From Lytechinus pictus (lineage: Eukaryota): a stretch of 64,000 nt of DNA. Each line of letters starts with the position of its first letter. Within the stretch, counting starts at the first letter, position 1. The notes below the pieces were generated by a model. That model was not told where the DNA came from. It did not search any database and saw only the letters and a program-made list of their open reading frames with translations. Positions 16,845 to 63,881 of this stretch are shown piece after piece. The position numbers and the translations under genes are program-made. Location of the stretch: positions 51,460,001 to 51,524,000 of the forward strand of contig NC_087246.1 of the NCBI RefSeq assembly GCF_037042905.1, in the 5' to 3' direction.

Positions 16845-17219
16845 CCCCTTTCATAAACCCATCCTCCAATTAGCCGCCTAAGAGTAATGCGGATATTTCA
16901 ATAAAAATTGCGTTCACAAACTCCGAAAATAATCCGCACTATTTTTACGAGCGCCCGTCCTGAAAAGGCGGATAATCGTCATGGCAACCGCACACACCCC
17001 CTCCGATGCGGTTGTGTTGGAAAAGGGTGACCTTGTGACCGCACCATGGCAATTATCCGCATTACTTTGAAATGCGTTCATAAAGTCAAAATCTGGTCCC
17101 GATGCCGCTATTATGCGGATAATTGCAGCATCAAAATTATGCGGATAACTCTGGTCCTCCTCCGATTTTACGACCAAATTATGCTGCTATTAGCCACATA
17201 ATTGGGTTTATGAAAGGGG
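16845..17219 (-). mobile_element. 375-bp MITE, TIR CCCCTTTCATAAACCC, TA-flanked
   Basis: TA|cccctttcataaaccc ... gggtttatgaaagggg|TA; reverse-orientation copy of 57410-57784. Confidence 0.9.
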
Positions 17220-29800: not shown

Positions 29801-31379
29801 TTTTCATCTTCACCGTTTTATTTCTCTCAACAAAAAACTTTGCAAATCCCTGAATCGGTCATAATGCTTCAAATGGTTTAGGAAATACAACGTACAAGAA
29901 TTAGAAACGTGATCTATTCCTGCCACTTCCTTCCTTTAAACAATGTTATTTTTTGTAAATATGTTAATTGCCTGAAATAAAAACTAAAAACACTGATTAA
30001 TCAGATTTGACTAGACAACTTGAAGAATAAACATGGATAAAAAAAAATAAGAGAGACAATTTCATACTGTTTTAAAAGCACAAAATATATAGTCATGATT
30101 AATCTACTAATGGTATAAAGGAAACATGCATGCTTGACAATTTAATAACAATTTACTGAATTCAATATCGTTGGAAAGGTAATTTTGAATCTAAAAATGT
30201 GCCCCCCCTCTTTGTCTATCAAAATGTATCTATCTATTATCTATCTATCCATCCATCCATCCATCTTACCAATAGATCAAACTATTGATTCATCTATCTT
30301 CTATCTAATTATCCTTTCAAATCTCTTCTATTGTTTCTTTCTCAAGTCTCAGAAATTTCTCATCTTCTGTCATTCTCGTAGAATGTAGATTTTTTCAGTT
30401 CATCTGCGCATCCTTTCTTACTACTGAACCCTGTATCCCAAGACACAAGACAGCTCATCTTGGCTGGTTTATTTGTAAGGATTGTTGCCATGGAAACCTA
30501 GTAATTCCACCATTTCAAACAGATGTTGACAACTTCTCCTGATGTGGGTGGTTTGAGTCATAATTTTTGTCTTCATTTTAGCTATATCACTTCCTTTACA
30601 ATAAAGTATGTGAAACTGAGCTACGCTATTAAGCACTGTATGTGCATAGAGTGCTTGTAAAATTGAAACCGATAGTACTATTGCCATTCAGCCTCTAATG
30701 CTTAAACGATATTTGATCTGTAAGCACTATTTATAGACATACATTAGTCATGATTTTTTTCAACAGTAACGCCTTTTATTACCTAAATATGATGAATTTA
30801 GGTATTGATTGGCAAACAAATGCAAGAATGTTTAAAGTTAGAAAATAAGGAATAAAAATTCTACTGCAAATGGGAAAATAATGGTTTTAGACAGTACAAA
30901 TTTTTTTATATAGGAACTAAATATTATTTCTAATTGGTATCTGGAACAATTATGATTACATTATTAATTGAAATCCACTGTACCCCCAAGTATTAATCTT
31001 AAATTTACTTAAGGTGTGTAATACTAGATTCTAAATCCTGCAACTGAGCTAGAACTTCATAATGACACAGGATAAAATAGTATTAAAACTGTATTTTACT
31101 GGGATGTTCAAAACATACTCTTCTAAAACCATTGCATAAGTTAATCAGCATTTAGACATACCCTTGATAATATTATTCATAAATGAAAATGAAAAAGATG
31201 TAGATTAAGGAAGAAAAGTAATCTTAACAAGGATGAGGAGAATAAAGAAGCAGTAAGGAAATAAAGGGGACAGAACAAAAATATATAAAGACAAAACTTT
31301 GGGTCTGTGCTCTGACTCCTTCCCATTCAGTGAAGGAGTCACAGCTCGGAGGCCAAAAAAAAAGATAAAGTGAAAGGAA

Positions 31380-32167: not shown

Positions 32168-32512
32168 CTCTATTCCAAAGTCAACTCTAAAAATGTTTAT
32201 CTCTGATCCTAGCTCATCCACTTGTTTTGACAGGATTGACTGACAGGTCTCTGAACATTACACACATCGGATCACATCAACAGATGCTGTGCTTTTGAGT
32301 TGTTTGTAACTGTGCATACAGTGAAAGTTGAGGGAGTTATTCAACATCAAGTTCAAGCTCGCTCGAGTAGGAAAAAAAGAAAAGGGGACCCCCTTCACGA
32401 TTTCAGAGGAAATTGATTTAATACCTTTGTTAAAAAGGGTGAGATGTGTTTTGTCCTGAACACGGGCCATAACAATCCTCGCACTAATGGCATGAGACCG
32501 AGCTATTTAAAA
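32168..32512 (-). promoter_or_regulatory. Candidate promoter/first exon
   Basis: TTTAAATA (32504-32511) about 26 nt before an Inr-like TTAGT (32483-32487); donor GAG|GTACGT at 32167. Confidence 0.3.
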
Positions 32513-32814
32513 GTTGCTGACCTAAATACGACTGGTGGAAATCACTAATCTACCTCTAAATGCGTCATTTATAACAAGCGATGAAAGACAGACAGACAAG
32601 TTCAGAAACATTGTTAGATTTATGACTCCTACTAGACAAAATTGCAAAGTTTACATTCTGCATCAGAGACGTTGCTACAGGGGGAGGATGTGGAGCATAT
32701 GAGTTGGGTGGATCATGGAAGGGAGAAAAGGATGATAGGATAAGTAGGCCTTGCAATTTCCCTATATGTGGCATCCTCAGATCCCCATATTCCTATAGGC
32801 CCCTATAGGCTCCT

Positions 32815-34722: not shown

Positions 34723-34957
34723 NNNNNNNNNNNNNNNNNNNNNNNNNNNNNNNNNNNNNNNNNNNNNNNNNNNNNNNNNNNNNNNNNNNNNNNNNNNNNN
34801 NNNNNNNNNNNNNNNNNNNNNNNNNNNNNNNNNNNNNNNNNNNNNNNNNNNNNNNNNNNNNNNNNNNNNNNNNNNNNNNNNNNNNNNNNNNNNNNNNNNN
34901 NNNNNNNNNNNNNNNNNNNNNNNNNNNNNNNNNNNNNNNNNNNNNNNNNNNNNNNNN
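34723..34957. other. Assembly gap
   Basis: 235 consecutive N. Confidence 1.
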
Positions 34958-36319: not shown

Positions 36320-36861
36320 ACTTTATGGACTGTATATAGAGACCCCCGAGAAACCCCCAGAGTACAAACGAAAAATGTAAATCATGTAGATGTTATGCAA
36401 TAAATATGTATTCGCAGGATATGAAAGATTACAAATTTCTTGAATCAATCATTAGCATGTCTATTCGTTTAACAATTAAGTCTCACGTAACTAACCCTGG
36501 TTTGAAAATACAGAAAGAAACAAAAAGAGAATAATATATATGATTGAGCAGAGGATAATATATATGATAGAAAGAAACTATATGATTATAATCAAGTATA
36601 TCAAAAACGAATAATCAAAGTTAACTTTTTTCTCAGAGGACTGCATAGATCTGTGGGGGGGGGGGGGGGACAAACATAATTATGATTTGTTTATGAACAG
36701 AAAAATGGAGTCAAATGTTTTTACCATACCTGTACCCCTCCTCATCTTTCCCCCTTCTAATCTCTTTGCTTCTGTGTACTTACATTTAGGATGTTAACTG
36801 TTTTGTCCCCCTCCCCACTCTCTATCCATGTCCCTCACTTTACTCCCTCTCTCATTGTTAA

Positions 36862-37435: not shown

Positions 37436-38518
37436 TTAAAGACGTCACCATCTTCCCATACCCATCCCCTGCTGTATCTTCGTCTGCTCCTCCCTCGCTC
37501 CTTCTTCATCTTAACTTTCTTCTATTGGCCTACATGCAGCTTTAGTTCTGTCTTATGCAAAGTTTACTTTCCATGTATTTAGGCCACCCGTAACATTTGA
37601 TTATCTCATTTTTAAACTGCATTATCATCAATCTCAATATTTCCATATATATATTCATTGTGGTTACTTCCATAGCAAGTGACTATTCCATCATTCTGAA
37701 TATCATACTGATCAGCGATCGATCAAATACTCTTTTTGGGCTATGCAGAGCTGCACAGATCTGATATGTTGGGGGAAGTGTGGAAGCGGGGGTGGTGGAG
37801 GGGCTGGGCAAGGCACTGGGAACGAATTTGGCAGGGGGTGCTGAAACTTTAATACAAGCACAAAAAAGGGTTTCACTACAAAATGAAGGTCGTTTTGGTG
37901 CCAAGAAATTTGACAAGCAAAAAAAAAGTGTTCGACTTAAAATGTCAGTCATTTTCCTTATATTTTTCAAATTTGCCACACCTACCTAAATCCCAGGGGG
38001 TGCTGCCTATGGAGAATGATACACACAACACCCCCTGAGAAAATCATAGGGGTGCTGTAAAGCACCCCCGCTTCTCAGGGCCATGGGGCCGGGATTGTAT
38101 TCTCTATATGCATAATCATATTTCCATGCCTCATAGTCATTTAATAATATAAATCACTTGCATGCCATGCTTCTCTGATTTCCTTTACTAATGCCCCCAT
38201 TTTCCTCAATATATTCTCCCTTACATCAGATTTTATCCATGGAGCCTGTCATATTGTGAAATGGTGATACTGTATAATGGTAAACTCCAAATTTTACAAA
38301 GAGGGTACAACTTCAATTACATAGCTATCATGAAATAGCTTCTAAATATAGGACAGGGCAACATTAATTTGCGTAGATATGCATGCATAAGACATCAAAG
38401 TATATGTATATGTTGTCTACCACTTCATCAACATGAATCCAAATACCTCCAACAAAAATATTCATAGACAAATGAATAAAAAAAATATAACAAGCAAACA
38501 TGCATTTGAATTCCAAAC

Positions 38519-38524
38519 TTTATT
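38519..38524 (-). terminator. Candidate polyadenylation signal of the LRR/Calx-beta gene (implies a ~4.4-kb 3' UTR)
   Basis: AATAAA on the minus strand followed by a GT/T-rich element (gtttgcttgttatatttttttt). Other AATAAA hexamers are likely in this AT-rich DNA. Confidence 0.3.
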
Positions 38525-39691
38525 TTTGGTTAAAAAATAGGTTATACAACTTTGTCCATGTAAAACAAATAATAACATATCCAAGCACAAACAGTTTCAC
38601 CCAAATTTGCATAAGATATAAAGTTATACACATATGTGTATATAAAAAAAGAAAGTAATATATCATCATCATTTTCACAAACTCAAGAAGGTTTCATCAA
38701 ACAGAGACAAATTTTGAAATTCCACATGTTTAAAGTCCATCTTTATATATATATATATATGAATTCAATGAATACACAATTTTTTTTCAGTCTTAATTGT
38801 ATAGATGTAACTTATACCTCAAAAGAGTTTGCAGTTATGAAAATGATCCAACTTTGATTCAGTTTTAATTCTATACGGATATGATTTCATATTTTTTCAA
38901 TATTTTTCCCTTACCACAATTGGTTGGATTGATTTAAAATGTAAGAAATTCAGAGGTAATGGGCCATATCAGCACACAATTAAGACATTGGAAAGCACCA
39001 GAATTATATCTCTTTAACAAATATTTTACAGTGAGGATCTCTTCTTGTTATCATCAACAAGTTTATGAATACAATAATAAACATCTTTCTTGCAGTATCA
39101 TTTCTAATTATGGTATCTAATCTAACTCCAGCAACAAAATACTATCCAAGTACTGTTTTTGACTTAGAAGAACTCTGTATAACATACTCAGCCAACTATA
39201 TGTTTATGATTTCCACCTAAATCCAAGACAACTACTTATAAGAATGAAACCCAGTAATAAAGGCCTTTGTCATGCTGCATGAGAATTACAGCATTTTGGA
39301 TGGAAAATAATGGATCATAATGCTAATTATAATTGTATTCCCCCAATTCAGGTTACCATAGTACTTTGCAAGGATACAATTGGAATGTGACTACGGCATG
39401 ACCTTCATTGGTGACTCCATGCACAAACTTCTCCATATTATTCCATATCAAGCAAGCATGCACATCACTTTTAAAGATTTACCAGTTTCTTTGGTAACCC
39501 CTCCCCTACCGACCATCTTTTGATTTGAATCCTTCAACTGACATACCTTGTTTGGACAGGTATATAATGCCCTACCCCATACACTTTGACCTAATATATA
39601 TGTCTTGTATATATGTACATAATATATGTTACTTCAGAATTGAGTCTCTGGAGTAGATTCAAAGCCTCACTTGGAGTAGATTTATCACTTC

Positions 39692-42889: not shown

Positions 42890-43065
42890 TCATGCTTTGG
42901 CAGTCACATCACTGTATACTTTGCCTCGATTCTGCACAGCAGCATAACGTACCCCAGCAGTAGTTGCTTTATTGATCGTCCTGGTCTGACGATACCAGAG
43001 ATACCCTGCTATGACTGCCACAATCACGCTGATCAGTATTATGGGAACTACTATGGCTGCTACAT
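42890..43065 (-). CDS. Alternative terminal exon B: TM helix + tail with two YxxV motifs
   Basis: aatcag|AT GTA..; VAAIVVPIILISVIVAVIAGYLWY-RQTRTINKATTAGVRYAAVQNRGKVYSDVTAKA*; in phase with the stalk exon. Confidence 0.82.
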
Positions 43066-46000
43066 CTGATTCACACAAAAAGAGTGTAGGGGTTGGACGA
43101 GGTAAGAGGAATAGTTAGGAGTGAAAAGAGAGAGTGAAATAAATAAAGTAAATAATCCAATTTGAAGATCAATACATATAGTTAGATTATTTCCTTTTTG
43201 AAACATCTACTTGTGAAATGAAGAGCAATGGACACTGTTCATCTATCAATCATTGGGTGATGTCAAGCATATTTTTTTTTAATGTTGAAAGCTTTGAAAG
43301 CTACTGAAAATAATTATGTCTAAATAAGACGAGTGAATATTTCATCAAAATATGACAACAAATAGCAAAGTCATTGAATGTTAAAGTTTAGCAAAAAGTT
43401 CTGTAAAAATATGCATGTCGTCATAAATATGTGTTAGGTGGGCTGATGTCATGTCCCCGATTTCCTTTTTCTTATGTTTATTTCTTATTTTCATATATGT
43501 GTATGCTATGTCTCCCTTTTTAAGTTCTAAAAGAAGTTGCAGAAATGCATATATGCATGAAGTCTATTGTCAATCCAATTTTTTGTCATTCTTCGACAAA
43601 ATTTGAATAAATATTTTTCATATCTAAAAGACAAAAGAATAGGTGGGGATATGACATCATCAACTTGCTCATTGCATATTCATGGAGACATGCATAGAAC
43701 TGTTTGACTGAAATAATGCAAAACCTAAAATAACTTTGTTATTCCTTGTCCAACTTTGATAAAAATGTCAATGTTTAGTTTGTCTGAACTTACTTTATCT
43801 GTGTAAATTACCATATCTGTTTGAATCATAGTAGGCCTACAGTTTTATTTCCAGCCTGGAGTAGCCTTTTTTTAAAGTGCAACAACACTAACAGGAATAC
43901 ACAAACAACACAAATAAATATTGATAATGACTTTGATGGCTTGAAACTGAGTGACTTCACACCTTCAAGTGAAAACATCTCAAATTCAATCGGGTGATGT
44001 TAAGTTCTGTGTTGACGTTTTGATGTTGGTGTTAAATCATTTTTTCTGTCGGCACAACACCAAGCTTTATCAACTAAATTGGTCTTGTGACAAATCTTTT
44101 TAAGAGTTGAGCTATCTAAAGGAACAAGAGTTGGATTATTTTTGTTAACTCAGAGCAGGTGTTGTAGCTAGAAAATGCAATCCAAATTGTGCTTCTAACA
44201 CAACACCAATATCAACACCAAACTTGAAATCACCCACTGTAAAAGGTATAACATGTCAAAAGCAAAGTAAATGAGATATAGCAACAATATGATCATACAT
44301 AGATTGCAGAGGAATGAAGAAAAACTATTATAAGTCTTTAAAAAAATTTAGAGCTTGGATAATGTGCAGATTTGCAATAGTTTTGATAAAAAAAGACATT
44401 ATTGTGAGATTTTCACTAGGTACATGGTCATGAGATTCATAAACATCAAAACAAAGCCCAAACTTGGGAAAAAGTCCCCAAGCCCTAGTACTTTGGCTGG
44501 TGTTGTTAAATGAGAAATTACATAGAAACCATTAACACTAACCATTACATTAAGTTTGAAACCTTCAACATTAGTCTTCAATAAGAACTTCTTACTAATA
44601 ATTATTTCATGTATGTCATACATATGTCCCACCACCAGTTTTGTTTCAAGTTTGGTGATGTCAGCTAGTGTTGGCATATTAAACAAAAAATACCGAGACC
44701 AACTGTCAAACACCAAAAGTACAATCACCGATCATGGCCCAGAATTGGTTGCTTTTGTGTTCCGAGTGTGTCGATACCACAAATACCCGACTATAACTGC
44801 CACTATCACGACGATCAGAACAATAGGTACCACAATGGCTGCCACATCTGATTTTTTTAAATAAATGGCAAGAAAGAGGAAGAGAGAGATATGAGTGAAA
44901 ATGATAATTGACATAATGGTTAGAGAATGACACACATATACACATAATTGGGAAAGAGAGGAAGACAGGTGTGAGAGAAATAATATTTAACATACAATTT
45001 ATTTTGGGGATCAATTTGCTATATTACAAACATATAGACAGAAAGAAAAATAAGTGAGTGAGAACTTGTTTACAACAGAACTTCTTGTGTACACCACATA
45101 AACAAATGAGAGGGAGAGAGAGGGGGGGGGGGGGCAGAAAGAGAGAGAGGGAAAGAAAGAGAAGGGGGAAGTGAGAACTGATATTTTGTGCATGTTAAAC
45201 AATACATTTAGAAATTAAGGCTTACTTCAAACAAACCCATATAAAAGTATTACCAAGTTGCAGCATTATTAAACATTTAGAGATTTTTTTAGGGGATGAT
45301 AATGGAATGTTGATTATGGTATAGGCCTGATAAAGACTTTTATGATACAACATATAACTTCTTTATTTTTTGTCTGAAAAAAAAAGGTTTTAATGAGAAA
45401 GAGAACCCCTCGCGAAATTTAATTTTCCTCTCGAAAAAGTTGATAACTTGAGATGGCAAATGGCAAGATTGCTTTGTAAAATTCCAACTTATGCTCCAAA
45501 GGTAAAATCAATGTAATATCATCAATGGAAATTGATGAATACATGTAAAGTATAAAAAGCTTAATAGAGCAGTGATGGTAACTTACTGACTGCGTTGGTA
45601 TTGGGTTGTGGTGATTGGCTGGCTGTAGTCATCATCACCACCGGGTTAGTAGTTTCATCTTCAGCCTGGGTAGATGCTGTGGGACTACGGGTTGTTGAAG
45701 TTGTCGTTGACATCATGGTGGGAACTGGACTATCATCTGTATAGTATAAGACAAGTGTGAATTTTAAATCAAGATAATAACAAAGCCATGAGAACATATA
45801 CTGATGAGAGGTAATGCTACTTTTGAGATGATCAAAAGCTCAAGTAAAGTTTTGATAGCAAAACAAGGAATTGGGATAATTTCAAAATTGACATTCAGGT
45901 ACCATACCAAAGTTGAAAATCCCAGACTTCATCTAACTATAACTTTAAATAAATGTGTCAGAATGCATGACAGAAAGGGGCAGGGGTTATGTACCCCTTG

Positions 46001-49000
46001 TGTAGTAATATATTCTCCTTCCCATTTTCCACTTGTAAGATTTTTGAGGGGGGGGGGCAATTTCATCATTTTGGAGGAGTGACAACATGTTTTATGAGTC
46101 CAATTTTGAAGAAGTCAATCCACACGGTTTTCTTGAGATTAAAAAAAAAAAAAAGCTACCTAAAGGAAATTTCTGAACCCACTCACCCAAACCATTCAGA
46201 TATTTTTATTGTCCATAATGCAATTAGTAACAAATGGAAATTCAATTTGTTCACACAAAAGTAATTTAGAATGTCTAAAGATAGAATGTCTTTAATAAGA
46301 TACAAAGATTACATGATACATATATGTAAACATTATACAAGTCAACAAAGATCAGTGAAATTAAGATAGAGGCGGGGGGGGGGGGGTGTGGGTAATACCA
46401 TTTTATGGCTATTAAATGAACGGATTGAGACAGGAATAAAAGAATTTACGAAGCGTGAGTTTCTGCCGGGAGGTGATCTCAGATGTTTGACTGTCCTAAT
46501 CAAATTATAATATTTACGGAAAGCACCCTTTTTCTTTTATTTTAGAGGCTTGCTTTTAAATTCTTTTTAGTTTTTGTAGATCATCTTTCCTACTCGCATG
46601 TATTAAAACAATAAAACCTCCCTTAAACATGGAACCTCCCTTGAATTAACACTCACTATCCTGTATGGTAACTCGTGTGGTGCCATCTACGACGGTTCCC
46701 ATGTTAGCTTCTCCACGTGACTCGATGGTTATGGATACCGTGAAGGATTCATCAGTCTCTATTATATCGTCATCAATGAGGAGGATATCAATACCAACTC
46801 TGGTTTGACCCTCTAGCATGGTGTGTGTGCTACCCACAGTCGGGGCAAAATCCTGTCCTTCTAATGCTGTCTCACCGGTAAAAGTCACATCTGCAATGAA
46901 ATATTCAAGGAAGAACATTCCATCATTAATTTTTACTAAAATACTGTAATAATATAGAGTAGAATAAAGTATAACACAACATTCTAGGTTTCACTTCATT
47001 GGGTTAAATATGAACGTTATATACACTCAGCAAAAAAAGTTCTTGGACACTTATAAAAGTTAAAATATTCCATATAGATATTTGATTAAAGGCAAATTAT
47101 TGTATGTCAACATGACCAGATAATATTCCTATTCCAGTATGACATGACATTTTCATGTGAACAGTCATGCATGGGTAGTTAAATGCTTTAAACAATAGCA
47201 ATGTCAGTAAAAGAAAATTGCAAGAAATGGATCAGTCAGTGCATGGCTGGTTTAAACAATGGCAATGTCAGTTAAAGAAAATTGCAAGAAAACGATCAGT
47301 CATTCTTTCAGTTGTGAAAGTTTGTGTGGCATAAATATCCATTAAACGATAAAAGCAAACTTAAAGGCAAATACCACTCTAAAAGTGAAGAGAAAGTTAT
47401 CCACCTTGGATGCATCACTATTCCATTGGAATTTTAAGTCAAAGTTAGTTGATGAAAAAAATGTCAAATTTCAGTATCTTGGCATAAGAAAAAGAAAATT
47501 ATCCTTATCCTACTATCTTCTGCAGGGGTGGTGGCCCTAGGTCGACCACTCCTAAGGCGGTCTCTAACTTCATCAGTAGCCAAATACCGCTGGTTCAAAT
47601 TTGAAATTGTTGTTGGTGAAACTTGGAAATATCGAGCCACTTGTCTAAATGACTGCCCAGACTGCAACATTCCTATTGCTCTTGCACGCTCTTGGTTGGA
47701 AAGCTTCATCTTGAAAGTGAGTGTCCAAATGATCCATCGCATTATGCATCCCTAAGCATTCAATTCAAATGATGACCAACTGTTGAAATTGTTGAATGTA
47801 TGCCTACAGGATGGCCATGATCATTAGCATTTGAGTGGTCCATTTCTTGCAAATTTCTTTTACTGACATTGCTATTGATTAAAGCATTTAACCACCCATG
47901 CATGACTGTTCACATGAAAATGTCATGTCATACTGGAAGAGGAATATTGTCTGGTCATGTTGACATACAATAATTTGCCTTTAATCAAATAACTATATGG
48001 AATATTTTAACTTTTATAAGTGTCCAAGAACTTTTTTTGCTGAGTGTATTACAATTGCAACATCCATTTCATATCCCCTTGAAGATTGAATGGTTAATCA
48101 GATTAAATGTCTTGATAACTCATTTTCTCTGATGATATACCTACTTTACAATAACTGGTGAATTCATGATAGTTCAAAAACTTTATTACGAATGAAAATA
48201 TTCTATTTCATCAAATTATATTATTCCAAAATAAATTTTACACCAAAAGAACAAAAGAAATAAAAGTCTGTTTTCAAATTAATCATATATGCCAATCTTC
48301 ACTTTATATTAGTTTTTCCTTTCAAGTTCAGTGATGCACAATGAACATCCAATCTCTGTAATAGTGTGTAAAGATGATTATCAATGTCATATGCACTTTA
48401 AAATATACACTATCATCACAAAACATGAGGACATATCCTCCATTGTTGAACTTCACATGGAAAGATGCCGTTGTTTTGCATACAAAATGGAAAACAACCA
48501 TTGTTTTGATAGAATCGCATAAGCTTGGCAGACAGCCAGACACGCAAACTAAATTTCTCTCCATGGGAATTTCATATCATATCATAAATGGGTAAGCCCA
48601 TCGCGTTCATTGGGTCCATTTTTGTGACATACCAAAACTATAAAACTGTGTCTCATTTAAACCAGGCAAATATCTTCTAATGATTACTTCTGCAAAAATG
48701 GTGGCCCACAAAGGATTACTACTTAAATATCAATCATGATTTCCAATGATATATATGAGTGTGATAGATCCATGTACCATTGGTTAAAAAGTTAATTTAT
48801 GCTACAACAAATCCAGAAAAGATTTCAAGATCAAACATGAATTGCTACGGTGGAGACATTCCTCACACAGATCTACACTGTGAAATAGAATAGTTGATAC
48901 CTAATTTACAAGGACATCTTGTAATTTTTTTTTACCCAACCCGATGGACTCGCCCAAATACAAGAAAAGATTTCTGGTAACTTATGACAATAGTCAGTGT

Positions 49001-52000
49001 AAATCACTGACTACATATTTGATGAAATGCTCTGAATTACAGTTTACACTTCCTACAGACATGGTTCAAATTTCTGAGAGAACAGTATATTTCTCAAGTG
49101 GCTGCCATTAAGGTCATGGGCATGTGATTTACTACCACAACTGCTTGTTCTTAAATCCTTTATACTTTTCTCTTTGATATTTGAACCCTATCTAAAGGAA
49201 GTTATGAACCATGATCGGGAGTATTCCTGGAAAATATAGTCAGTAATTTGCACTGACTTTTGTTATAAGCCACTAAAAATCCTTGCATCTGATTGGCTGA
49301 GAGCGACTCATTATGAAATGCTCCACGAGGATGGATTGCACCACCCTCCTCATCCAGGATATCGCCAAAAATACATTCTAAAACCAGCAGCTTTGGTATA
49401 TTATACTTAATGATCATTATTCTAAAATTCAATATCAACAAAAATGAAGTGATCGTTGCATGATTTATCACTGATTTATTCTTGAACAAAATTTGAATTT
49501 AGTCTTTCAATGCCTCTCTTTGCAATGGTTATTTGAATATAAAATCCCCATCAACATACAGAATTAGTTATGAAATATCAGGAGGAGGTTCTAATGAATA
49601 TTGTATCATTAAATATGTGCCCATTCCATGGTTTTAGAAGTGGTTTATACCAAAATGAAAAATGAACCAAAAAGTATGTACTGCAATTCAAATCATTACA
49701 TCTAAGTTGTGAATTCTACATGTTTTTATCTAGGATCTCTTGCCCAATATATGTCTCGTGAACTGACAATGAACCTAAATTTAGAAAATTTATAAACTAT
49801 TGATTTTCTGAAACTTGATATACTGGTTTTAATAAATGCCTAACAAACTTTTGAAGTATGTATTTCATCATAACAACATGACTGACTTAATTTCCAGTAT
49901 AAAGCATTAATTGGTTATGAATTATGTATCGATAATTTGCAAAGCTTACTGGTACTTGTTTTGATGTCATTTGTAATGCATAAACCTGTTTCATATATTC
50001 TCCCTTTTCTGAGATATTTAGGGGTGTTAAAAAAAAACCTGCGATGAAGATCAAAGCTATTACCATTAAGTATTTCAACCACATGAAACATGATTTCAGG
50101 TGTATGACAAAATTCATCATCAAGGCCAGAATTTTAAACACACAAACAACCACACAAACCAAAATCTCTCATTTGTGACTTTGTAAACAAGTTGTAATCA
50201 CCAAAGAATGCATTATCAAATTATTTATGCATATCATAATACCTATGAATTCTAACACCCCACACAAACAAGAGTATAAACACCAAAATAGCCTTGAATA
50301 GAACAAACTAAAATTCATTGATTTTTGGTACAGGTAAGGCCATCTTTGAGATGAACACCCCACTAACAATTTTTGTTCTTTTAATCAAAATTTCAATGTT
50401 ACCTGGTTGTTTTTATTTTCTTTCCTCTCATACAACTCTGCACTGGAGTACAGGAAGGGGGGGGGGGGAATGGACCCTCAAAATTTTCCATGACCAAGAA
50501 AAAAATAGAAAAAAGAAAGAGAGAAGGGTGAAATATGATATTATTTTCTGAATATTATGGAAAAATCTATCACAAAATTTGAGTTTCGTAATAAAAAAAT
50601 TCTAATTTTTGCTTGCTCGCAACTTTTTACAAATTTTGCCAGATACGCCATATCTGGCCCCCTCAAAATGTTTGCCTTATTATGCCACTGCAACTCTGTC
50701 TCTCTCTCTCTCCGTCCAAGATCTTTCTATGTTTCAAAAGGGTTGAAATGCCCTGTTTAATTTCCTTGATGTGGTCTTGGTAATGTTAGTTTATTTATTC
50801 TGCTTAGAATGTTATACTTAAAGGAGAATGAAACCCTTGGAGCAAGTTAGCTTTTGTGAAAGCAGAAAAATCAAAGAATAAGATCAACAAAAGTTTGAGT
50901 AAAATAGGACTAGCAATAGAAGAGTTATGAGCATTTGAATGTCGAGATCACTAATGCTATGGAGATCCTCCCATTGGCAATGCGACCAAGATCTATGATG
51001 TCACAGATGAACAACTCTCCCCTTTTGAACACTGAAAATATACCCCAAAACATCTCTTTTTGCTCATTCTAATCATATGACAAACGATTCATCAATGATA
51101 TAATGTTGTGAAACCTCTGTACTTGTCCTCTCATAAAGAGAACACCTCAACTTGTGATAGACTCTATAAAAGTGAGAATATAGGTAAAATAAGTACTAAA
51201 GTAATGAGGGAGTTGTACGTGTGTGACATCACAGATCTTGGTCGCATTGCCAATGGTAGGATCTACATGGCATTAGTGATCTCAATATTCAAATGCTCAT
51301 AACTTTCTTATTATTCATTCAATCTTCCTCAAACTTTCAACAATATGTTTCTTTGATTTTTCTCTTTGATATGGATTCAGCTGGTTTCAAGGGTTTCATT
51401 CTCCTTTAATTACTCTTTCTTACCGAACTGCACGATTGTCCCCACTATACCAGTTCTAGTAACCACAACTTCAGCAACTCCAGCATCCTCTGCTACTCTG
51501 TATTCAAGTTCTTCAAACGAAAACAAGGCAGAGGCCGGCTCTGCTAATGCATCTGTAAATTCAAAATAATAACACGACCACAATGAGATGTTCAGACATT
51601 TGAATTAAACTGGGTTCCAAAAGAAACATATCAAACTTATAAATTCCACTCAGTCAAACTGAACAAAATTTTGACACAGGCTATCTTCAATAATCTTTAC
51701 TAAGCACATATCAATAATTAAGAGATTGGTTTAATCACAAAGAGGCTGTAGCCCCTCAATTCAATTGGTTCCGGAATCCAAAGTCACAAAATGGCAACAA
51801 CAAAAAAAAAGACTGGCCAATGAAAAGGGGGGTGGGATTGAATGATCTTACCAGTTTATTAAAGTTCCCATGCAGTATGGCCATTGGCATGTTGAATTGA
51901 TTGCCTCAATAAACTAAGAAGTTACAGAATTTAAAATTAACATTTTAAACACACCTATTGAGGTCAAAGAAGCATAATGCATGAATGGACTCAATAGCAG

Positions 52001-55000
52001 TCAAGCAAAGAATGACCATTTGGTTTAATCCCATCTCATTTTCATTGGTCTAATTCCTTTGCCATTTTGTGACTTTGGATTCCGGAACCAATTGATTTGA
52101 GGGGCTACAGCCTCTTAATTATTGACATGTGCTTAGTAAAGATTAATGAAGCTAGCCTGTGTCAAAATTTTGTTCATTTTGACTGAGTGGAATTTGTGTA
52201 GCGCACTTGTGAAGTTTGATAAGTTTCTTTTGGAACAGTTTATGTTCTTCATGTCCGGAGCTTCATAGTCTGAATGCCCAGAAGAGTGACTACTAAAAAA
52301 AAACCACCAACTTTCTTTTATATAAAAAGCATGACACAATAACACATCATATTGCATTAACACACATAAGGAATACAAGCAATATGAGAAACAATTGCAG
52401 AATTTAGGAAAAGTATAACATTAAGAGTAAATATCACATGATTTAATAGTTGGATGATTGGTCTAAAAATAACGAATTTCTTCATTTTTAAAAGGGAACA
52501 TTGATAGTATAGTTTTTTTTCTATCTTTCATAAACAGAATCATGTTTCAAAAGAATATACATATATTTGAATGTATTTTAGTTGTGCGATGCCATTAATG
52601 TCATGAAATATACATAATATTTGAAGTTGTGCAATGTCATTAATGTCATGAAATGAAAGTTTCAATCACTAAAAGAATGCATTTAATTTTAATATTTCTT
52701 GCAGGGTTTTAACTGTTATCTAGTCAGTTTTCTAAGTGAAATAATCAAATGCATCTTTGTGTATTGTACTTACCTATAGCTTCAAATATTGTTTCAGAAG
52801 TACCCGAGCATTCACCAGTGAGAACAGGGCTATTACTCGATGCCAACCAACCTTTTAACCAAGCATTCGCCGCATTACTACAATCAAATGGATTACCATT
52901 CAACAACCTGTATTGAAAAAGATGATTGCATTCCGATTATCAAACAAATTTTGTCGGCCCAGTCATCCAAACTGTCGTACCACAGATATGACAGTGCAAA
53001 CCCATTTCACAGATAATCAACTTCAAAGTGTACTATAATTTCCACACTTTTGTCCCCAGCCTTACAAGATTTTCATTGCCTGAAACTACATTTTGTTTAT
53101 TTACATATTTGTCTTCTTTACATAGGGTAGCCTGTTCAGTGTTTAAAATACTGTTCTCAACCAGGGTCCTGCAAAATACATATTTACATAGAACAATCAT
53201 AAGAACACAATATACAAAACATGAAATAAAAATTATTACATTACAATACAATTACATGACCAAGACAATTGTTTACATTAGTCTCTTTATTTTGAATACA
53301 CTAAAACAAGAATCCAGGGAAATAATGCAAAAGAGCTACAAGCTTGTAATTTCCGTTTGAGCAGTTCAGATTTTTCCTGTACAAAAACGCCTTAGGACAA
53401 TGCTGACACACTTTCCATAGTATGCGCGATCACCACAATGTCATATCACTGACCGCGCATTTCTCCTCCATCATCTCAAATTTTCTCCTAATGATGTGGT
53501 AAAAAACTGACATTTTCATGGACTAATTTGTACTCAATAATCCATAAAATGATTACATACACTGTTTTGTTCAATCAATCTGAGACGATACATTCTATCT
53601 CCTGTATTTAAGGAGATAAATGGATCACATCATCAGGTAATATGAATATGACATCACTCTCATGGAGATCATTTCATGACTTGCAATCAAAATGATGAAG
53701 TAATAATCCTGCAACATCTTCTAAAGGTTTACCAACAAAGAACTCACATTGGAATAGGTGATTACATATTAATGTTTCCAAATTCCCAATCAGTACCATG
53801 AAGATGTTTGCATTATACTGGTTTATCAACAAAACATCTGTACAAAAAATTGACCCTCATACCAATTGGTCCAGCAGTGTACACATCCACACCATTCTAG
53901 ATTCTAGTCTATCAAATCACCAATATTAACAAATGGTTTTGAGATGATTTTTTTTTCACATTCATGGGATCATTGTTCTATTTCTTTTCTTTAAATAAAA
54001 ATGCCATCAATCCATATGGTAGAATAATATTTGGACATGATCATACTTACAGCTCAGTTAGACCAGACACCAAATTGAAACCAGTCTGATCAAGGGTGGA
54101 AAGACTGTTCTGCTCAAAGTTTCTATAACATGAAAATAATATAGCAATTTTTAAAATATGATAAATTTCAGTGGGAGATCCAGAGAGGGGGAGGGAGAGG
54201 GGGAGAGGGGGAGAGGGCAAGCCCCCATTCCCTGCTGGTCCATTTAGGAGGCAACAATATTTTATTAAAAATATTAAACAAAATTGATTTTTTTTTTCTG
54301 TTTAGAGGCTCTATAAGATTTTCATAGATCAAAAGATTGAATGGATCATTTTTTAATATATAATTTTCTTTCACAATGAAATATGCCTGAATTTCAATTT
54401 TTGAAGTTTGAAAAAAGGCTAAACTGATAAATCATTTCCAATTCTCTATATCAGCCATTCTCAATTAATTTTGTTGAAGCGCCAAATTTCTTGTTGAGAA
54501 TCTGGACTGCTCCACTATCCAACACGCGAATAGCGAAATATTGTGGTATGGGGGGGGGGGGGGGATGCAGGACCAACTGAAGAGCAGAAAGCCTTTTAAA
54601 TGGCCGAGAGGGGTTCTCAATCAACAGAAGATATCAAAATACCAACATACTACACAATTTATTTATCATTTACGATTGGTACAAAGACTATGTATATTAT
54701 ATGTGAACATAGATTTGTGAACAGTGCTTTTAATAATAACAATAATAATCATAATTATGTTTTATTTACTCAGGGTAGCCATTTCGGTTAGGGAACTGCA
54801 GCGGGCCCTGCATTTCCATGTATGTTATTACTACCCTTCTCCAATTTAAATGCTGAGCGCCAAGCAAGAAGGCAGAAGGTTCCATTCCTAAATATATATA
54901 TATATATTTTGTATGACTCTGTTGGGGATCGAACCCACGGCCTCCCGTTCATGAGGCTGACGCTCTACCACTGATCAACATACCCGGTTTGCTTTTTAAA

Positions 55001-58000
55001 CACGACCCTCATTAAGAACAAAATTTAATACAGAAACATGATAATTAATGCTAATTTTAGCAAGTCACTCATCATTTTTTTAAATAAATTGTGTAGTATG
55101 TTGGTATTTTGATACCTTCTGTTGATTGAGAACCCCTCTCGGCCATTTAAAAGGCTTTCTGCTCTTCAGTTTGTCCTGCATCCCCCCCCCCCCCATACCA
55201 CAATATTTCGCTCTTCGCGTGTTGGATAGTGGAGCAGTCCAGATTCTCAACAAGAAATTTGGCGCTTCAACAAAATTAATTGAGAATGGCTGCAATAGAT
55301 CCTCCATAATAGGGGTTATCGAATGCTAGATTACACAAAATCAGAGGAAATCAAATAGCATTTAGATTTTAAAAAGAGCTGAGTTTTCCAGATTAATAGA
55401 AGATCAACCTTTTATTTTCTAATGTTTTTTCTTTTTCTCTACCGGCTCCCACGCGCCACTCCGGAAGGCTCGGCGCGCCACAAGTGGCGCGCACGCCACC
55501 ATTTGAGAATCCCTGCTCTATATCATCTTTGACGTAAATACAAGCCGCAAAGCTACTGTTCAGAGAGGATACCCCCATATTTCAATAGTGTGAATAACGT
55601 TATACAAAATTCCCCAGTTTGAATACTTTAAATGGCAAGGATTTCAATGAATACACAGAAAGAATTGATTTCATGACAACCGGTACTTGGAAGCAAAACT
55701 GAAATGAAATACAGCGCGGTTCAATGGCGGGATTCGAACCTGAGGTCAAGGTAGCAGTTTGAATTTGATATCTAATGGGACCCATAGACATTTTATGGAA
55801 ACCTGTCTAGCAGAAGATACTGATAATACACTTCAAAGAATTGTCTGTCTCGATCATAAATTATCACTGTAGTAAGAGAAATGCAAAGTTGCAAACTCAC
55901 AAATGTACAATTAATTATCCTTGTGGGTTTTTAGGGGCAGTGTTTTTTTTTTAAATAACAGTTCTGAAACTCGCTATGTTTTGTAAGTGTCTTAGCTATA
56001 AAATCAATTAAAATTAAAAAAAAATACTACTTTTATTCCAGCAATATAAGCTGAAAAAAATAATGGAAAGATATTTATACTCACATGGATGTCAACTGAT
56101 TGAGATTATCAAATGCCCCAGGATGAATCATTGTGATTAAATTGTTCTTTAAAATTCTAGAAAACAAGAATATGAAATTTACAAGCCACAATGAATAAAT
56201 GCCTTATGGATACAACCTAGAACCAATTTCCAACTAAAATTATGTAGGAGTATATTTCAAAAAGTTTCATGAAGTATTCAGTATAACTTTGCTTTCCAAA
56301 TCCAATGGATCTTATACAGGAATGTAGAAAGGTGGTCGTGTTTTAGAATGACAACTTATTAATTTCTCTTTAAACGCACATCATATTACAACAAAATGAA
56401 ATTAATATCATAAACTAATCCAAATAAAACTAACAAGAAACCTAGCAATATAGTTAAATTGAAATGATATTTGTCTACATTTCTTTAAACATTCAAAAAA
56501 TGAAAGAATAAACATTGAAACCTTTTATTTTTAACTTCATAATTACTTCATAATAGGTCCTATATCATAATCAGGCTTAATGTTAAATAGGAAATACATG
56601 TACATGTATGTGAAGGTCTGTACTCCTCATAATTCACAAATTTTCCTGTGCCAAATTCTATCTTTAGGCCCTATTCTGTTTCCAGTTTTGAAATGTATAC
56701 ATGTAGAATTGTGGACAATTGTAATTTCAATTTACCTAATTTGAAAAGTCTGTATTTTGCAGTCTCAATTGAATTAATTGATATAATGAATGTAAATGTA
56801 TCATGAAATAATTACAATTTAAAACAAAGATCAAATGCACTTGAAGTTAATGGTCAATAGATCTTAAAAATCACAATTATAGTTTGATTTAGATTAGAAT
56901 AGATCCAGGAGAATGATAAAAAATACAAACCAATGAACTGTTTAATTTTTGTCCTTTTTATACTTATAAAGGACAGCGAATATTAGACATACTTGTGAAC
57001 TTCGGGCATACAGTTTTTAAATATTTGCAACAAAGGTCGCGAACTTTAGATAGATAGATGTATAGATAAATATAGGCCTATAAACAAAATAATGTAAGTG
57101 AGATGAAAGTCAAGGTACAAGCTACTCACATTCTTTGCAAAGGTACATTTGTAAATGTGTTTGATGGTATTTCCTGGAGGCTATTGTAAGAAAAATCACT
57201 GTAAAGAAAAGAAGGACATATGATCAAGATTGAAGAACATGATTAATTGCACCAGTTATTACTAGAACATTCCGAGTTTACATGAACTCTGCCCCGGACT
57301 TGCAAGGTTGTTGGGAGTGTAAGAATGCAACTTATGACCCAAGTTTTTCAAGTTTTGTAGATCAGTAAAGATTGGTCAAGAGAGTTTCCAAGGTAAAGAG
57401 CGACAAATACCCCTTTCATAAACCCAATTATGCGGCTAATAGCAGCATAATTTGGTCGTAAAATCGGAGGAGGACCAGAGTTATCCGCATTATTTTGATG
57501 CTGCAATTATCCGCATAATAGCGGCATCGGGACCAGATTTTTACTTTATGAACGCATTTTCAAATAATGCGGATAATTGCCATGGTGCGGTCACAAGGTC
57601 ACCCTTTTCCAACACAGCCGCATCGGAGGGGGCGTGTGCAGTTGTCATGACGATTATCCGCCTTTTCAGGACGGGCGCTCGTAAAAATAGTGCGGATTAT
57701 TTTCGGAGTTTGTGAACGCAATTTTTATTGAATTATCCGCATTACTCTTAGGCTGCTAATTGGAGGATGGGTTTATGAAAGGGGTAAAAGAGTCACCAGT
57801 TACTTCAATGGCATGGGATTTTATCCCACCGCTGCCACAAGGTATATGATACAAGACTTGATCTGTATGCACTCAAATCCAGAGGTGAAATCTAGGTTTC
57901 ATGTATAGGCACACGGATATGCTTTTCACACTACAGAAATTTCCCTTAGTCCCGGGAAATAGCTGGGGCTGGGGGCCTTAGCCCCACCAATTTCCCGGGG

Positions 58001-61000: not shown

Positions 61001-63881
61001 AGTCTAACTCCCACTTCCCTGAATACATGCAATAAACACAAGGTATTTGCACAAAAATCACAGCACATGTATACTATTGAATTGAGAAATACATACATTT
61101 TACAATAGATGATTACATTTCTCTTGAAGAAAACTGAAACACATCATGTGATTTAATGCATTGCATTATGTCTGTTGTTGGCTTTGCTCACATTGGTAAA
61201 TTGCCATCAAAGTCGAACTCAATTCTAATGTCAAGTTTGGTTTAAGGGCAAGTCCAAGAATTTGTGCGTGTTATGTATGGGACATTTCAGAGGCTTTAAT
61301 GACCTGAAAAGTAGTGTTAAATGACTTTGATTAGATTGAATACCCTCATGATGGTATAATCGACATCTACGAGAATAATAATAATTATTCATAAGAAGTC
61401 CCAACACTCTAGTATATCTAAGGCAAGTTTCATGTCATAAGCTATAACCTTCTAATTACAGACTCTAAACAAATTAATGACATGTTACGTATGGGACAGT
61501 TACGTATGGGACATTTTGTCCCCATAGAGAACGTAAACAATTTTCCCCATAATTTCAAAAATTTTAATAATTTGAAATATGGAAATAACAAAAGAGTTTT
61601 TTTTTCTTTTAAAATGTTCTATTGAGACATATTTGATATGACTGAAAAGGAAATTAGCCATTTCAACATTTTTTTTTCTTGTTTTTCATGGTTTCAAGAA
61701 TTTCTTATGTATTTCTCTTGTTTTGTATTTTTTTCATATTTTTCCATTTTCACAATTTTTTTGCTTCGATTGTTTTCATTAATCAATATTCATAACAAAT
61801 TACTCTTTAAAAACTAAAGAAAAAGGTATTTAATCACTTTTTAGAGCACTCTTAAAATTTGTTTTTCTCCATTCACTTTGTACACAAATCTCTCCATTGA
61901 CATTGTGTGTAAATGTCCCATACGTGACATGTTGTCCCATACGTAACAATTTTTTAATTAACTTTTAATTAAAAATAAACTATATTTTTGAATCTTTTTG
62001 TGGTATAACATTTTCATACTTAATAAATTAGAACTTCCCAGAGATGCAATAATACAAGTATTGTATTATGAGAAATTACTTTAAAAAATATCCTCAAAAT
62101 GTTACGTATGGGACATTCCATCCTTGGACAAGACCTAATTTGCATATTTAATTTGATGACCCACTTTTTCCCCCAAAAGCAATAAGATGTTAGGGGGTCC
62201 ATGTCCCACCTATGACTAAATCTCACAAGTTTTGTTTTTATTTTCTATGAGTTTTTATATTTGTCCCATACGTAACGCCCATTTTACCAATTATGCAAAT
62301 TAGGTGGCCCAAATTAGCATAAATATGCATATTATCAAATTTTTCTTTATGAAATTTTAAAATTCAACATTTGGGCTTTCTTACCCCACCAAAGATAACT
62401 CTTAAAAATTAAAGATGAAATTTTGCCTTCTAGGATGACCTTTTCTTGGACTTACCCTTAAACTTTTATTATTGTGATAATTAACCGGAGGCTCATCATA
62501 AATTTACACTGTAAAATTTCAAATTGTTTTGAATAAAAACTAATACTGAAGAACAGTCATCTAAAAGATAATATAGACAAAAAATTTAATAATTGAATTT
62601 ATGAGTAAACTTTAAATAAACATTCAAAAAGGGCTTCATAGTAAAAGTAAAACTAAGATCGCATTCATGATTGAGGAGTATCTAGATAATGGAAAGAACT
62701 GTTTCCTATTTACATAAATCTTCAAAATTTGCAAATATTGCATCAGTAAAGTATATAAACAAAACTAACAAACTTTACATGAAATAACATTATGCAAACC
62801 AGTGTATTCATCTTTCTTGAAGCAGTACTTACTGTACACTGGAAGAAGATGAAGAGGTTGATAAAGTAATGTCAAAAAAGCATTTTTTTTTTTGGGGGGG
62901 GAGGGGTTAATCTAATTGAATTTCAAAAGTTAATTTGGAATCATGATGGTAATACATACAGAATATTGAATTTGAGGGTTAAAATGGTGCATTATTTATT
63001 ACAAACTTCCCGGTATCCTTCACTCTGTTAATTTCTTTTTAAAAAATATGTATATTTTCAATTAGTCACTATATTCATGGGGGGGAAAAAATATTTAGAC
63101 CTTCACATTTTCTACATGAATCACATCAATAATTAGGCAATATGAAATAATGTAATTTCATGTAAATTGTGATTACACTGTTTCTGGAAAATTTTTACAT
63201 TACTTATTAGTTTACATAAAAGTATACAATCTCTACAACTTCTTCTAAAGCACAGGTTAATTGTAGGTCAATTATCCCAATGTATTAAATGCTTTGTAAA
63301 AACTGTTTAACATTTTCATTAACTATTCTCTATCATAGCTACCACTAAAAGTCTACCTTGCATTGAACTCATATGTAGGCTAATTTACAAGTCAAAAGTA
63401 CAATATTTATCACTCTTTAAATAAAAAGACTTTATATGTAAACAGGGCAATGGACTTCTGAGAATGAACACCCCTTCATTTTCAAAAGCATTTTCATTCA
63501 GGCAGTAAAAGTAATGATGATTACAACACATTCAGAGATCATACTCCATAACTCCACCCCACTCAGACCCCATCACAGTACCTCACCCTTTACACCAATG
63601 GCAATAGATAGAAACTCATCCACACCCACATCTCTTCTTACCCCCACACTACCAGCTGAAAGCAAGGTGTCAATGGACACAGCCGGCACATATGCAAATA
63701 CTTACAAGACATCGAAGTTCTGGAAGGATACTGCCGGAATGGTGTTCAGATTCAATCCAGAGCAGTTGAAAATACGATTTTGACATTGACATCCATCTGG
63801 CGTTCCACTAGGGCATTCTTGAGCAAAAACGAGGTGAAATATCACCAAAAAGAGCGTTACGACAAATATCCCCCTCGCCAT
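42890..63881 (-). CDS. Spliced gene: LRR + Calx-beta type-I transmembrane protein; 8 shared coding exons plus one of two alternative terminal TM exons (383 or 403 aa)
   Basis: Manual assembly with GT-AG sites and consistent phases (2,2,2,2,1,1,1,1): 63706-63881, 57130-57198, 56085-56156, 54051-54122, 52774-52907, 51424-51552, 46657-46890, 45587-45736, then 44732-44847 or 42890-43065. Totals are 1152 or 1212 nt, both multiples of 3 with no internal stop. Confidence 0.88.
44732..44847 (-). CDS. Alternative terminal exon A: TM helix + short tail without distal tyrosine motifs
   Basis: aatcag|AT GTG..; VAAIVVPIVLIVVIVAVIVGYLWY-RHTRNTKATNSGP*; in phase with the stalk exon. The acceptor is immediately preceded by an A-run, with the pyrimidine tract further upstream. 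Confidence 0.7.
45587..45736 (-). CDS. Ser/Thr/Pro-rich (mucin-like) stalk exon
   Basis: atacag|..|gtaagt; 150 nt, phase 1-1; DSPVPTMMSTTTSTTRSPTASTQAEDETTNPVVMMTTASQSPQPNTNAV. Confidence 0.85.
46657..46890 (-). CDS. Calx-beta domain, C-terminal half
   Basis: ttgcag|..|gtgagt; VTFTGETALEGQDF...ILLIDDDIIETDESFTVSI...TTRVTIQD matches Calx-beta TA..G.DF and I.DD...E..E.F.V. Confidence 0.9.
47024..48046 (-). mobile_element. Tc1/mariner internal-deletion derivative with ~205-bp TIRs
   Basis: TA|cactcagcaaaaaaagttcttggacac ... gtgtccaagaactttttttgctgagtg|TA; contains a transposase N-terminus. Confidence 0.93.
47464..47709 (-). pseudogene. Tc1 transposase N-terminal paired-like HTH domain only
   Basis: MKLSNQERARAIGMLQSGQSFRQVARYFQVSPTTISNL...RSGRPRATTPAEDSRIR with the GRPR motif; no DDE domain. 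Confidence 0.88.
50441..50690. mobile_element. hAT-like MITE with 8-bp TSD
   Basis: CAACTCTG|cactggagta ... tatgccactg|CAACTCTG. Confidence 0.85.
50822..51405. mobile_element. Kolobok/T2-like MITE (AGGAGAATGAAACCC)
   Basis: TTAA|aggagaatgaaacccttg ... caagggtttcattctcct|TTAA; ~185-bp imperfect arms. Confidence 0.9.
51424..51552 (-). CDS. Calx-beta domain, N-terminal half
   Basis: tttacag|..|gtaaga; translates ALAEPASALFSFEELEYRVAEDAGVAEVVVTRTGIVGTIVQF, matching Calx-beta F.F....Y.V.E..G...V.V.R.G. Confidence 0.88.
51590..52276. mobile_element. Foldback element with ~240-bp arms
   Basis: Includes aagaggctgtagcccctcaattcaattggttccggaatccaaagtcacaaaatggcaa and its near-perfect inverse at ~52058-52115. 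Confidence 0.8.
52774..52907 (-). CDS. Last LRR + LRRCT cap exon
   Basis: atacag|..|gtaagt; translates LLNGNPFDCSNAANAWLKGWLASSNSPVLTGECSGTSETIFEAI; the NPFxC..WL..W..C pattern is LRRCT. Confidence 0.9.
54051..54122 (-). CDS. LRR exon (72 nt)
   Basis: ttatag|..|gtaagt; translates NFEQNSLSTLDQTGFNLVSGLTE. Confidence 0.9.
54452..55292. mobile_element. Foldback element with ~213-bp near-identical arms
   Basis: 54452-54666 is the reverse complement of 55081-55292 apart from a few substitutions and poly-G length. Confidence 0.88.
54730..54987 (-). mobile_element. tRNA-derived SINE inside the foldback spacer
   Basis: Head ..gatcagtggtagagcg..gtgggttcgatcccc (A/B boxes); (tta)n tail. Confidence 0.75.
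56085..56156 (-). CDS. LRR exon (72 nt)
   Basis: ttctag|..|gtgagt; translates ILKNNLITMIHPGAFDNLNQLTS. Confidence 0.92.
57130..57198 (-). CDS. LRR exon (69 nt)
   Basis: tttacag|T GAT..AGA AT|gtgagt; translates DFSYNSLQEIPSNTFTNVPLQR; phase-2 flanks typical of LRR exons. Confidence 0.9.
57410..57784 (+). mobile_element. 375-bp MITE, TIR CCCCTTTCATAAACCC, TA-flanked
   Basis: Full copy, same length as 16845-17219; internal TTATCCGCA/TGCGGATAA repeats. Confidence 0.9.
58600..58930 (+). mobile_element. L2-like LINE 3' remnant
   Basis: PKLLNQLP / STETFKSKLKK ORF2-end motifs (frameshifted), then a gaagcaccatgagca..gcgct..tattgttatt tail. Confidence 0.5.
61246..62457. mobile_element. 1.2-kb non-autonomous Kolobok-like element
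   Basis: TTAA|gggcaagtccaagaa ... ttcttggacttaccc|TTAA; seven internal copies of GTTACGTATGGGACA. Confidence 0.82.
63706..63881 (-). CDS. Exon 1: signal peptide + LRRNT cap
   Basis: MARGIFVVTLFLVIFHLVFA-QECPSGTPDGCQCQNRIFNCSGLNLNTIPAVSFQNFDV: hydrophobic leader, then CP..C.C....C....L..IP LRRNT pattern. Donor TT|GTAAGT. Absent from the ORF track because the unspliced ORF is 59 aa. Confidence 0.9.

Follow-up and report, generated by a model that had tools for sequence, protein, structure and literature searches.

In the 64,000-nucleotide (nt) stretch of the Lytechinus pictus genome analyzed here (the window; assembly GCF_037042905.1, contig NC_087246.1, positions 51,460,001 to 51,524,000 of the forward strand), the minus-strand gene LOC129254021 carries two tandem homologous copies of its transmembrane (TM) exon, exon A (44732..44847) and exon B (42890..43065). 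We consider it likely that this duplication gives two membrane isoforms that share one ectodomain, one with and one without a tyrosine-bearing cytoplasmic tail, and that both are under selection. The production of tail-plus and tail-less isoforms by one gene is well supported, with RefSeq models in two species. Coordinates are those of the window unless another sequence is named; the exons of the gene and the mini-exon are on its minus strand, and for other features a strand, where assigned, is given in parentheses.

The gene was identified by a profile-free search in which its second Calx-beta exon was compared with 1.8 billion representative proteins, followed by a cluster look-up. The search returned a protein of 403 amino acids (aa) with 99% identity, and the look-up named it XP_063951170.1, isoform X1 of LOC129254021 from L. 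pictus, in a cluster that also holds XP_063951171.1, the 383-aa isoform X2. Splicing the exons of the window with exon B last reproduces X1 residue for residue, and splicing them with exon A last reproduces X2 in the same way, meaning that alternative use of exons A and B is already listed in public RefSeq annotation. The 403-aa product is a type I membrane protein composed of a signal peptide, LRRNT, three leucine-rich repeats (LRRs), LRRCT, a Calx-beta domain, a mucin-like Ser/Thr stalk, the TM helix, and a short tail. Pfam matched LRRNT, LRR_8, and Calx-beta in this protein and no immunoglobulin (Ig) domain. Like the type I membrane proteins of the LRRC4/netrin-G ligand (NGL) family, it has an N-terminal LRRNT-LRR-LRRCT module, which in that family is followed by an Ig domain, a TM helix, and a PDZ-binding C terminus; LOC129254021 differs in having a Calx-beta domain, no Ig domain, and C termini (TAKA and NSGP) without a PDZ-binding motif. 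The automatic RefSeq name of isoform X2, "LRRC4-like," mirrors the LRR module only. The gene is a single locus with no paralogues in the L. pictus genome, and its identifiers are named in no paper that we found.

The last exon common to all isoforms encodes the Ser/Thr/Pro-rich stalk (45587..45736; donor GTAAGT at 45586). It leaves one base, A, which joins the first two bases of either downstream exon (A+AT) to form an Asn codon, so exons A and B are both in frame (phase 1), and the same acceptor, aatcag/AT, precedes each of them. Exon A, the last exon of X2, encodes the TM helix and a 13-aa tail without tyrosine (ending in RHTRNTKATNSGP), with its own stop after KATNSGP. Exon B, the last exon of X1, reads a near-identical helix and then continues as RQTRTINKATTAGVRYAAVQNRGKVYSDVTAKA to its own stop after SDVTAKA, adding a juxtamembrane stretch and a 20-aa tail, VRYAAVQNRGKVYSDVTAKA. 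The cytoplasmic part of the B form is 33 aa in total, including the 20-aa tail with its two tyrosines (VRYAAV and KVYSDV), versus the 13-aa stub of the A form. The tail-coding segment (42893..42952) begins at an internal GT (GGG/GTACGT, GT at 42952-42951), the same GT that serves as a donor in isoform X2 of Strongylocentrotus purpuratus. The homology of exons A and B ends precisely at the shared GGG, and nothing is alignable downstream. On the upstream side, their likeness begins a few tens of bases 5' of the acceptor, where it is no better than that of shuffled pyrimidine tracts: the 150-nt flanks score 15 versus 11.1 +/- 1.9 for shuffles, and 19 of 300 shuffles reached the observed score. 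No further copy of this TM exon exists in the 812-Mb genome. Exons A and B, which share one upstream donor and a phase but have separate acceptors and stops, have the layout of alternative terminal coding exons, whether as an alternative last exon or as an alternative acceptor. A previous reading made from the letters of the window alone (the sequence-only reading) had described this pair, its acceptors and stops, and its barely alignable flanking introns, and both the alignments and the two RefSeq splice chains bear out that description.

Is exon A a dead duplicate? The sequence-only reading had argued that it is not, and that both copies were long under purifying selection, from a count over the 28 codons VAAI..R. 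The same count was obtained exactly: 12 codons are identical, 12 differ only synonymously, and 4 carry a replacement. With the Nei-Gojobori method, which gives 14.0 synonymous (Sd) and 6.0 nonsynonymous (Nd) differences over 23.2 synonymous and 60.8 nonsynonymous sites, pS is 0.60, pN is 0.10, and the ratio of nonsynonymous to synonymous rates (dN/dS, omega) is ~0.09, with a one-sided Fisher p of 4.5e-6 for the synonymous excess and a dS of ~1.2, near saturation. At the first, second, and third codon positions, 24/28, 26/28, and 14/28 sites are identical. A neutrally evolving exon A should give an A-B omega of at least 0.5, and the value of ~0.09 thus argues that exon A is not drifting.

Each copy is also constrained separately. 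Between L. pictus and Lytechinus variegatus, exon A differs at 4 of 116 positions and exon B at 6 of 176, that is, 3.4% in each, versus 8.65% in the two flanking introns (p = 0.024 and p = 0.005, respectively), and neither exon contains an indel. The adjoining stalk exon diverges by 8.0%, the intron rate. Taking S. purpuratus as the reference, 5 to 6 synonymous changes and 2 conservative replacements (M12V and A19V) are private to the A lineage, and the B lineage has about equal numbers; by a hand calculation, such a scarcity of replacements on the A branch has a binomial p of ~0.007 under neutrality. The frame, acceptor, and stop of exon A are intact without indels in three Lytechinus sequences. 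Low omega together with separate constraint on each copy characterizes a tandem exon duplication kept by selection. These three independent lines of evidence rest on small numbers and all point in the same direction, suggesting, in agreement with the earlier argument, that both copies are held by purifying selection, and we read this as indicating that both isoforms are used.

Homologues of LOC129254021 were found only in L. variegatus and S. purpuratus. When the open frame of exon A was searched against proteins it gave no match, and a search with the C-terminal 184 aa of X2 gave nothing new, hence no transcript-derived fragments from other urchins. L. variegatus has two near-identical loci on one chromosome, each with exons A and B in the same order and each with three isoforms: X1 ends in B (404 aa), X3 ends in A (384 aa), and X2 ends in A through an AG located 6 nt upstream of the exon A acceptor (386 aa, "KSD"). 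This AG is present in L. variegatus and absent in L. pictus. A 6-nt acceptor variant of this kind is typical of transcript-supported models in the NCBI pipeline. The combination of one ectodomain with or without a tyrosine-bearing tail, which the sequence-only reading had suggested, is thus annotated as X1 and X2 in L. pictus and as the same pair in L. variegatus. The two L. variegatus loci (CM031016.1, 22.49 Mb and 29.72 Mb) are whole-locus copies with 97 to 100% identity, each located after a gene with mevalonate diphosphate decarboxylase domains, and stem either from a recent segmental duplication or from haplotypes that the assembly contains twice.

The only TM exon of S. purpuratus is of the B type, and homology in the 3' untranslated region (3'UTR) identifies it as the positional orthologue of exon B. 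Its isoform X1 reads through to VRYAAVQNRGKVYADVTAKA and a stop, and its isoform X2 uses the internal donor GGG/GTACGT, exactly where the A/B homology of Lytechinus ends, to reach a mini-exon encoding IYSVL and a stop. Both Lytechinus species have kept the internal donor intact. A homologue of this terminal coding exon is also conserved in both, located in the window at 36633..36650 as an 18-nt mini-exon with a strong acceptor (cacag/ATCTATGCAGTCCTCTGA, encoding IYAVL and a stop), and no isoform containing it was present among the annotated L. pictus proteins retrieved. After the mini-exon comes a conserved G(G/T)TAAC, which may be a donor. As a separate observation, part of the tail-coding segment is duplicated in tandem at the S. 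purpuratus locus (L003, 20815-20875 and 21095-21215). This partial copy is decayed, with a premature stop and an insertion of ~250 nt that divides it, and an older S. purpuratus model splices into it (NRG and a stop). Independent duplications of the 3' end of the gene have occurred in two lineages.

How old is the duplication of exons A and B? Synonymous differences over ~23 sites amount to 14 between A and B, 10 between A and the S. purpuratus exon, and 9 between B and the S. purpuratus exon. Since these distances form a star-like tree, the duplication appears to be roughly as old as the split of Lytechinus and Strongylocentrotus, or older with a loss in S. purpuratus, the numbers being too small to decide. 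Exon A is lineage-restricted, not dead. The idea that exon A is a copy of exon B whose tail segment was precisely deleted is unsupported, as the flanks after the two stops align no better than shuffles.

These observations can be arranged into a mechanism. The TM exon of LOC129254021 would have been duplicated in tandem long ago, and splicing from the stalk exon would now join either the proximal acceptor A, giving a tail-less membrane protein, or the distal acceptor B, giving the tailed form. A third ending could be produced from exon B by the internal donor and the mini-exon, a route annotated only in S. purpuratus. That species, with a B-type exon only, drops its tail through GGG/GTACGT, and copy A may be a hard-wired tail-less version of what the ancestral exon already did by splicing. 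The process would amount to subfunctionalization at the level of exons: the exon that was duplicated had an optional tail, and one of the copies lost it for good. In both Lytechinus species a run of A breaks up the pyrimidine tract of the exon A acceptor, which makes this site probably weak and regulated.

The tail itself may act as a functional switch, through either phosphotyrosine docking or YxxPhi sorting, with regulated isoform choice. Between L. pictus and S. purpuratus, 19 of its 20 residues are identical (95%; dN 0.046, dS 0.93), compared to 67% identity in the LRR module, 57% in the Calx-beta domain, and 60% in the stalk, and by this measure the B tail surpasses every other part of the protein in conservation. 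VRYAAV fits the ITIM (immunoreceptor tyrosine-based inhibitory motif) consensus, (I/V/L/S)xYxx(I/V/L), and is kept in L. variegatus and S. purpuratus; KVYSDV falls outside this consensus, with K at position -2. The two motifs also have the spacing of the immunoreceptor tyrosine-based activation motif (ITAM), Yxx(L/I)-x6-12-Yxx(L/I), in the form YAAV-x6-YSDV, but the +3 residue is V at both sites in the three species. YAAV and YSDV lie 16 and 26 residues past the TM helix and match the YxxPhi pattern, which is expected at least 7 residues from the membrane, and the alternative ending IY(A/S)VL is also YxxL.

The motifs lead to the strongest alternative, which we regard as possible but not favored: the tail serves sorting or endocytosis through a tyrosine-based signal (YxxPhi, as in YAAV and YSDV), and the isoforms differ in surface residence, recycling, or polarized targeting rather than as a signaling form and a decoy. 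Both tyrosines stand in YxxV, which fits YxxPhi, while the ITIM consensus fits only the first, and the L/I that a canonical ITAM carries at +3 is found at neither site. The ending IYSVL of S. purpuratus and its Lytechinus counterpart IYAVL again place a YxxL at the C terminus, suggesting that a YxxPhi element is swapped. The TM segment of exon A, VAAIVVPIVLIVVIVAVIVGYLWY, contains no charged residue for adaptor pairing and so lacks the hallmark of an activating paired receptor. The two isoforms would then resemble those of Drosophila Dscam1, whose alternative TM exons send the protein to different compartments. Speaking against a sorting signal, 19 conserved residues of 20 are more than a 4-residue sorting motif needs, and the YxxV-x6-YxxV spacing is ITAM-like. 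The sequence does not separate signaling from sorting as the role of the tail, and the roles "signaling versus decoy" are plausible for the two isoforms, with sorting fitting equally well. A more specific proposal, a single-gene paired receptor, seems rather improbable as a whole. Here an LRR/Calx-beta form with an ITIM-like, SH2-recruiting tail would be set against a tail-less ligand competitor, the choice would be made through the duplicated TM exons and regulated by cell type or immune challenge, and the Lytechinus duplication would hard-wire the internal-donor option of other echinoids.

Several points weigh against the reading that both isoforms are made and kept by selection. The expression of exon A rests on RefSeq models, as annotated isoforms in two species. 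In a sequencing-run index, the runs of one organism hold 66 to 80% of a 3-kb region and 100% of exon A, and those of a second organism hold 5 to 9% and 40 to 50%; none is recorded as RNA, and DNA of a close relative would give the same figures (exon divergence 3.4%, intron divergence 8.65%). Exon A is missing throughout 36 kb in S. purpuratus, meaning that the gene family can do without it. The sequence-only reading had named orthologues without copy A, or with a neutrally evolving one, as evidence that would count against it; this is borne out in part, as S. purpuratus lacks copy A. In L. variegatus copy A is present and constrained. The first AATAAA lies 883 nt past the exon A stop, so that exon A could be a true last exon with a poly(A) site of its own, or its acceptor could be one of two in a long terminal exon that ends at the distal, conserved AATAAA block near 38500. 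Finally, the selection tests rest on few sites, with 23 synonymous sites in the comparison of the copies and 4 and 6 differences in that of the species.

Could exon A then be a tolerated low-level splice variant, that is, splicing noise on an old duplicate, with its conservation a small-sample effect or the result of another constraint, such as a splicing regulatory element? Its absence from S. purpuratus, the weak site suggested by the A-run in both Lytechinus species, and the lack of a canonical poly(A) signal within 880 nt of its stop would agree with this explanation. We nevertheless hold it to be unlikely: the A-B omega is far below the neutral expectation, synonymous changes outnumber conservative replacements 5-6 to 2 on the A branch, the frame, acceptor, and stop have survived in all three Lytechinus sequences, and exon A is as constrained as exon B between species next to an unconstrained stalk exon. 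It is less likely still that the functional difference lies in the membrane helix, where positions 9 (V/I), 12 (V versus S/T), and 19 (V/A) set A apart from B and could thereby bring different membrane partners or oligomerization, for although B has a stripe of small residues (S/T12, A16, and G20) where A has V12, and both TM sequences are fixed within Lytechinus, position 12 is variable (M in S. purpuratus; S in the window and X1 and T in the older model XP_054748442.1 of L. pictus), the TM differences are conservative, and the tail is the largest and best-conserved difference between the isoforms.

Two isoforms distinguished by their tails have counterparts in known systems. Exons 17.1 and 17.2 of Drosophila Dscam1 are tandem homologous TM exons used alternatively behind a common ectodomain, as in LOC129254021. 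They are internal, mutually exclusive exons with common downstream cytoplasmic exons, unlike exons A and B, each of which has its own stop, so that exon choice also sets the presence of the tail. Vertebrate paired receptors (KIR, LILR, and Siglec, and the NKp44 isoforms) likewise place similar or identical ectodomains on a tyrosine-motif tail or a short tail. KIR, LILR, and Siglec receptors are mostly separate genes, and a charged TM residue in their short-tailed members recruits ITAM adaptors, whereas exon A has no such residue; there is no sequence homology with LOC129254021. The contrast drawn in the sequence-only reading, between one gene here and separate genes in vertebrates, is weaker than it was put, since single-gene precedents exist. 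The CEACAM1 gene produces by splicing, on one ectodomain, CEACAM1-L with a long ITIM tail or CEACAM1-S with a short tail without tyrosine motifs (PMC11646291, PMC4113144), and long-tail and short-tail isoforms of NKp44 also come from one receptor gene (PMC13072323). LOC129254021 resembles CEACAM1 in combining one gene and one ectodomain with a tyrosine-motif tail or a short tail by splicing. The means differ: the TM exon of CEACAM1 is single and the choice is whether a cytoplasmic exon is included, while in LOC129254021 the TM exon is duplicated and each copy ends the frame. The ectodomain is built of Ig domains in CEACAM1 and of LRRs and Calx-beta here, and recruitment of SHP is demonstrated for CEACAM1.

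The remaining coding exons follow the splice chain of XP_063951170.1 and XP_063951171.1. The coding part of exon 1 (63706..63881) contains the start codon, the signal peptide, LRRNT (matched by Pfam), and the start of the first LRR. Each of the three LRRs is on its own exon, all in phase 2, at 57130..57198 (69 nt), 56085..56156 (72 nt; Pfam LRR_8), and 54051..54122 (72 nt), and the LRRCT cap exon is at 52774..52907. The Calx-beta domain is spread over two exons, 51424..51552 and 46657..46890, both matched by Pfam Calx-beta (1.4e-7 for the second).

Older L. pictus models are XP_054770199.1, XP_054770232.1, and XP_054748442.1, and an earlier annotation contains a second, ~92% identical "gene," LOC129278020. 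This "gene" is probably a divergent haplotype, because no counterpart was found when looked for in this assembly. XP_054770232.1 runs through the donor of Calx-beta exon 2 (TIQDSEC and a stop) and would yield a secreted form, and XP_054748442.1 carries allelic replacements in exon B, Ser to Thr in the TM helix and Gly to Ser in the tail. A candidate third terminal exon, "C" (~44150-44238), matches the tail of XP_054770199.1 and was rejected as a conserved coding exon, since it diverges by 11.2% between the Lytechinus species, above the intron average, and its frame differs after 11 residues. The exon A stop is followed at once by an open frame of 110 codons (44402-44731), which was taken as a chance frame: it has no credible Pfam match, and the first 300 nt after the stop, which make up most of it, diverge at the intron level.

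Downstream of the coding exons, a noncoding block with an AATAAA (38466..38613, (-)), ~4.4 kb past the exon B stop, is 74% identical to S. purpuratus. It is likely a distal poly(A) region, which, if true, implies a very long 3'UTR. Further downstream of the gene, 30394-30624 and 32397-32596 share 72 to 80% identity with S. purpuratus and have no open frame on either strand; they are conserved noncoding sequence or a shared repeat. At 34723-34957 lies a run of 235 N, a gap or a masked segment. The intron between the Calx-beta exons contains an open frame with a helix-turn-helix of the Tc1/mariner transposase type (47467-47751 (-); Pfam HTH_38, 2.8e-8). An interspersed repeat occurs three times in the window, at 6929-7210 (+), 16917-17186 (-), and 57443-57712 (+), with a similar 90-aa open frame (beginning QHNLVVKSEEDQSYPH), and one copy is intronic in LOC129254021.

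Both isoforms are already in RefSeq, and receptor isoforms with long and short tails are familiar, so the value of the finding lies in annotation and as an evolutionary case study rather than in surprise. LOC129254021 offers a small and clean case of exon duplication followed by division of labor, in which selection appears to have acted on both copies for about as long as Lytechinus and Strongylocentrotus have been separate. The conserved 20-residue tail, in an otherwise fast-evolving and echinoid-specific surface protein, marks where function should be sought, and isoform-specific knockouts are feasible in L. pictus, which is genetically tractable.

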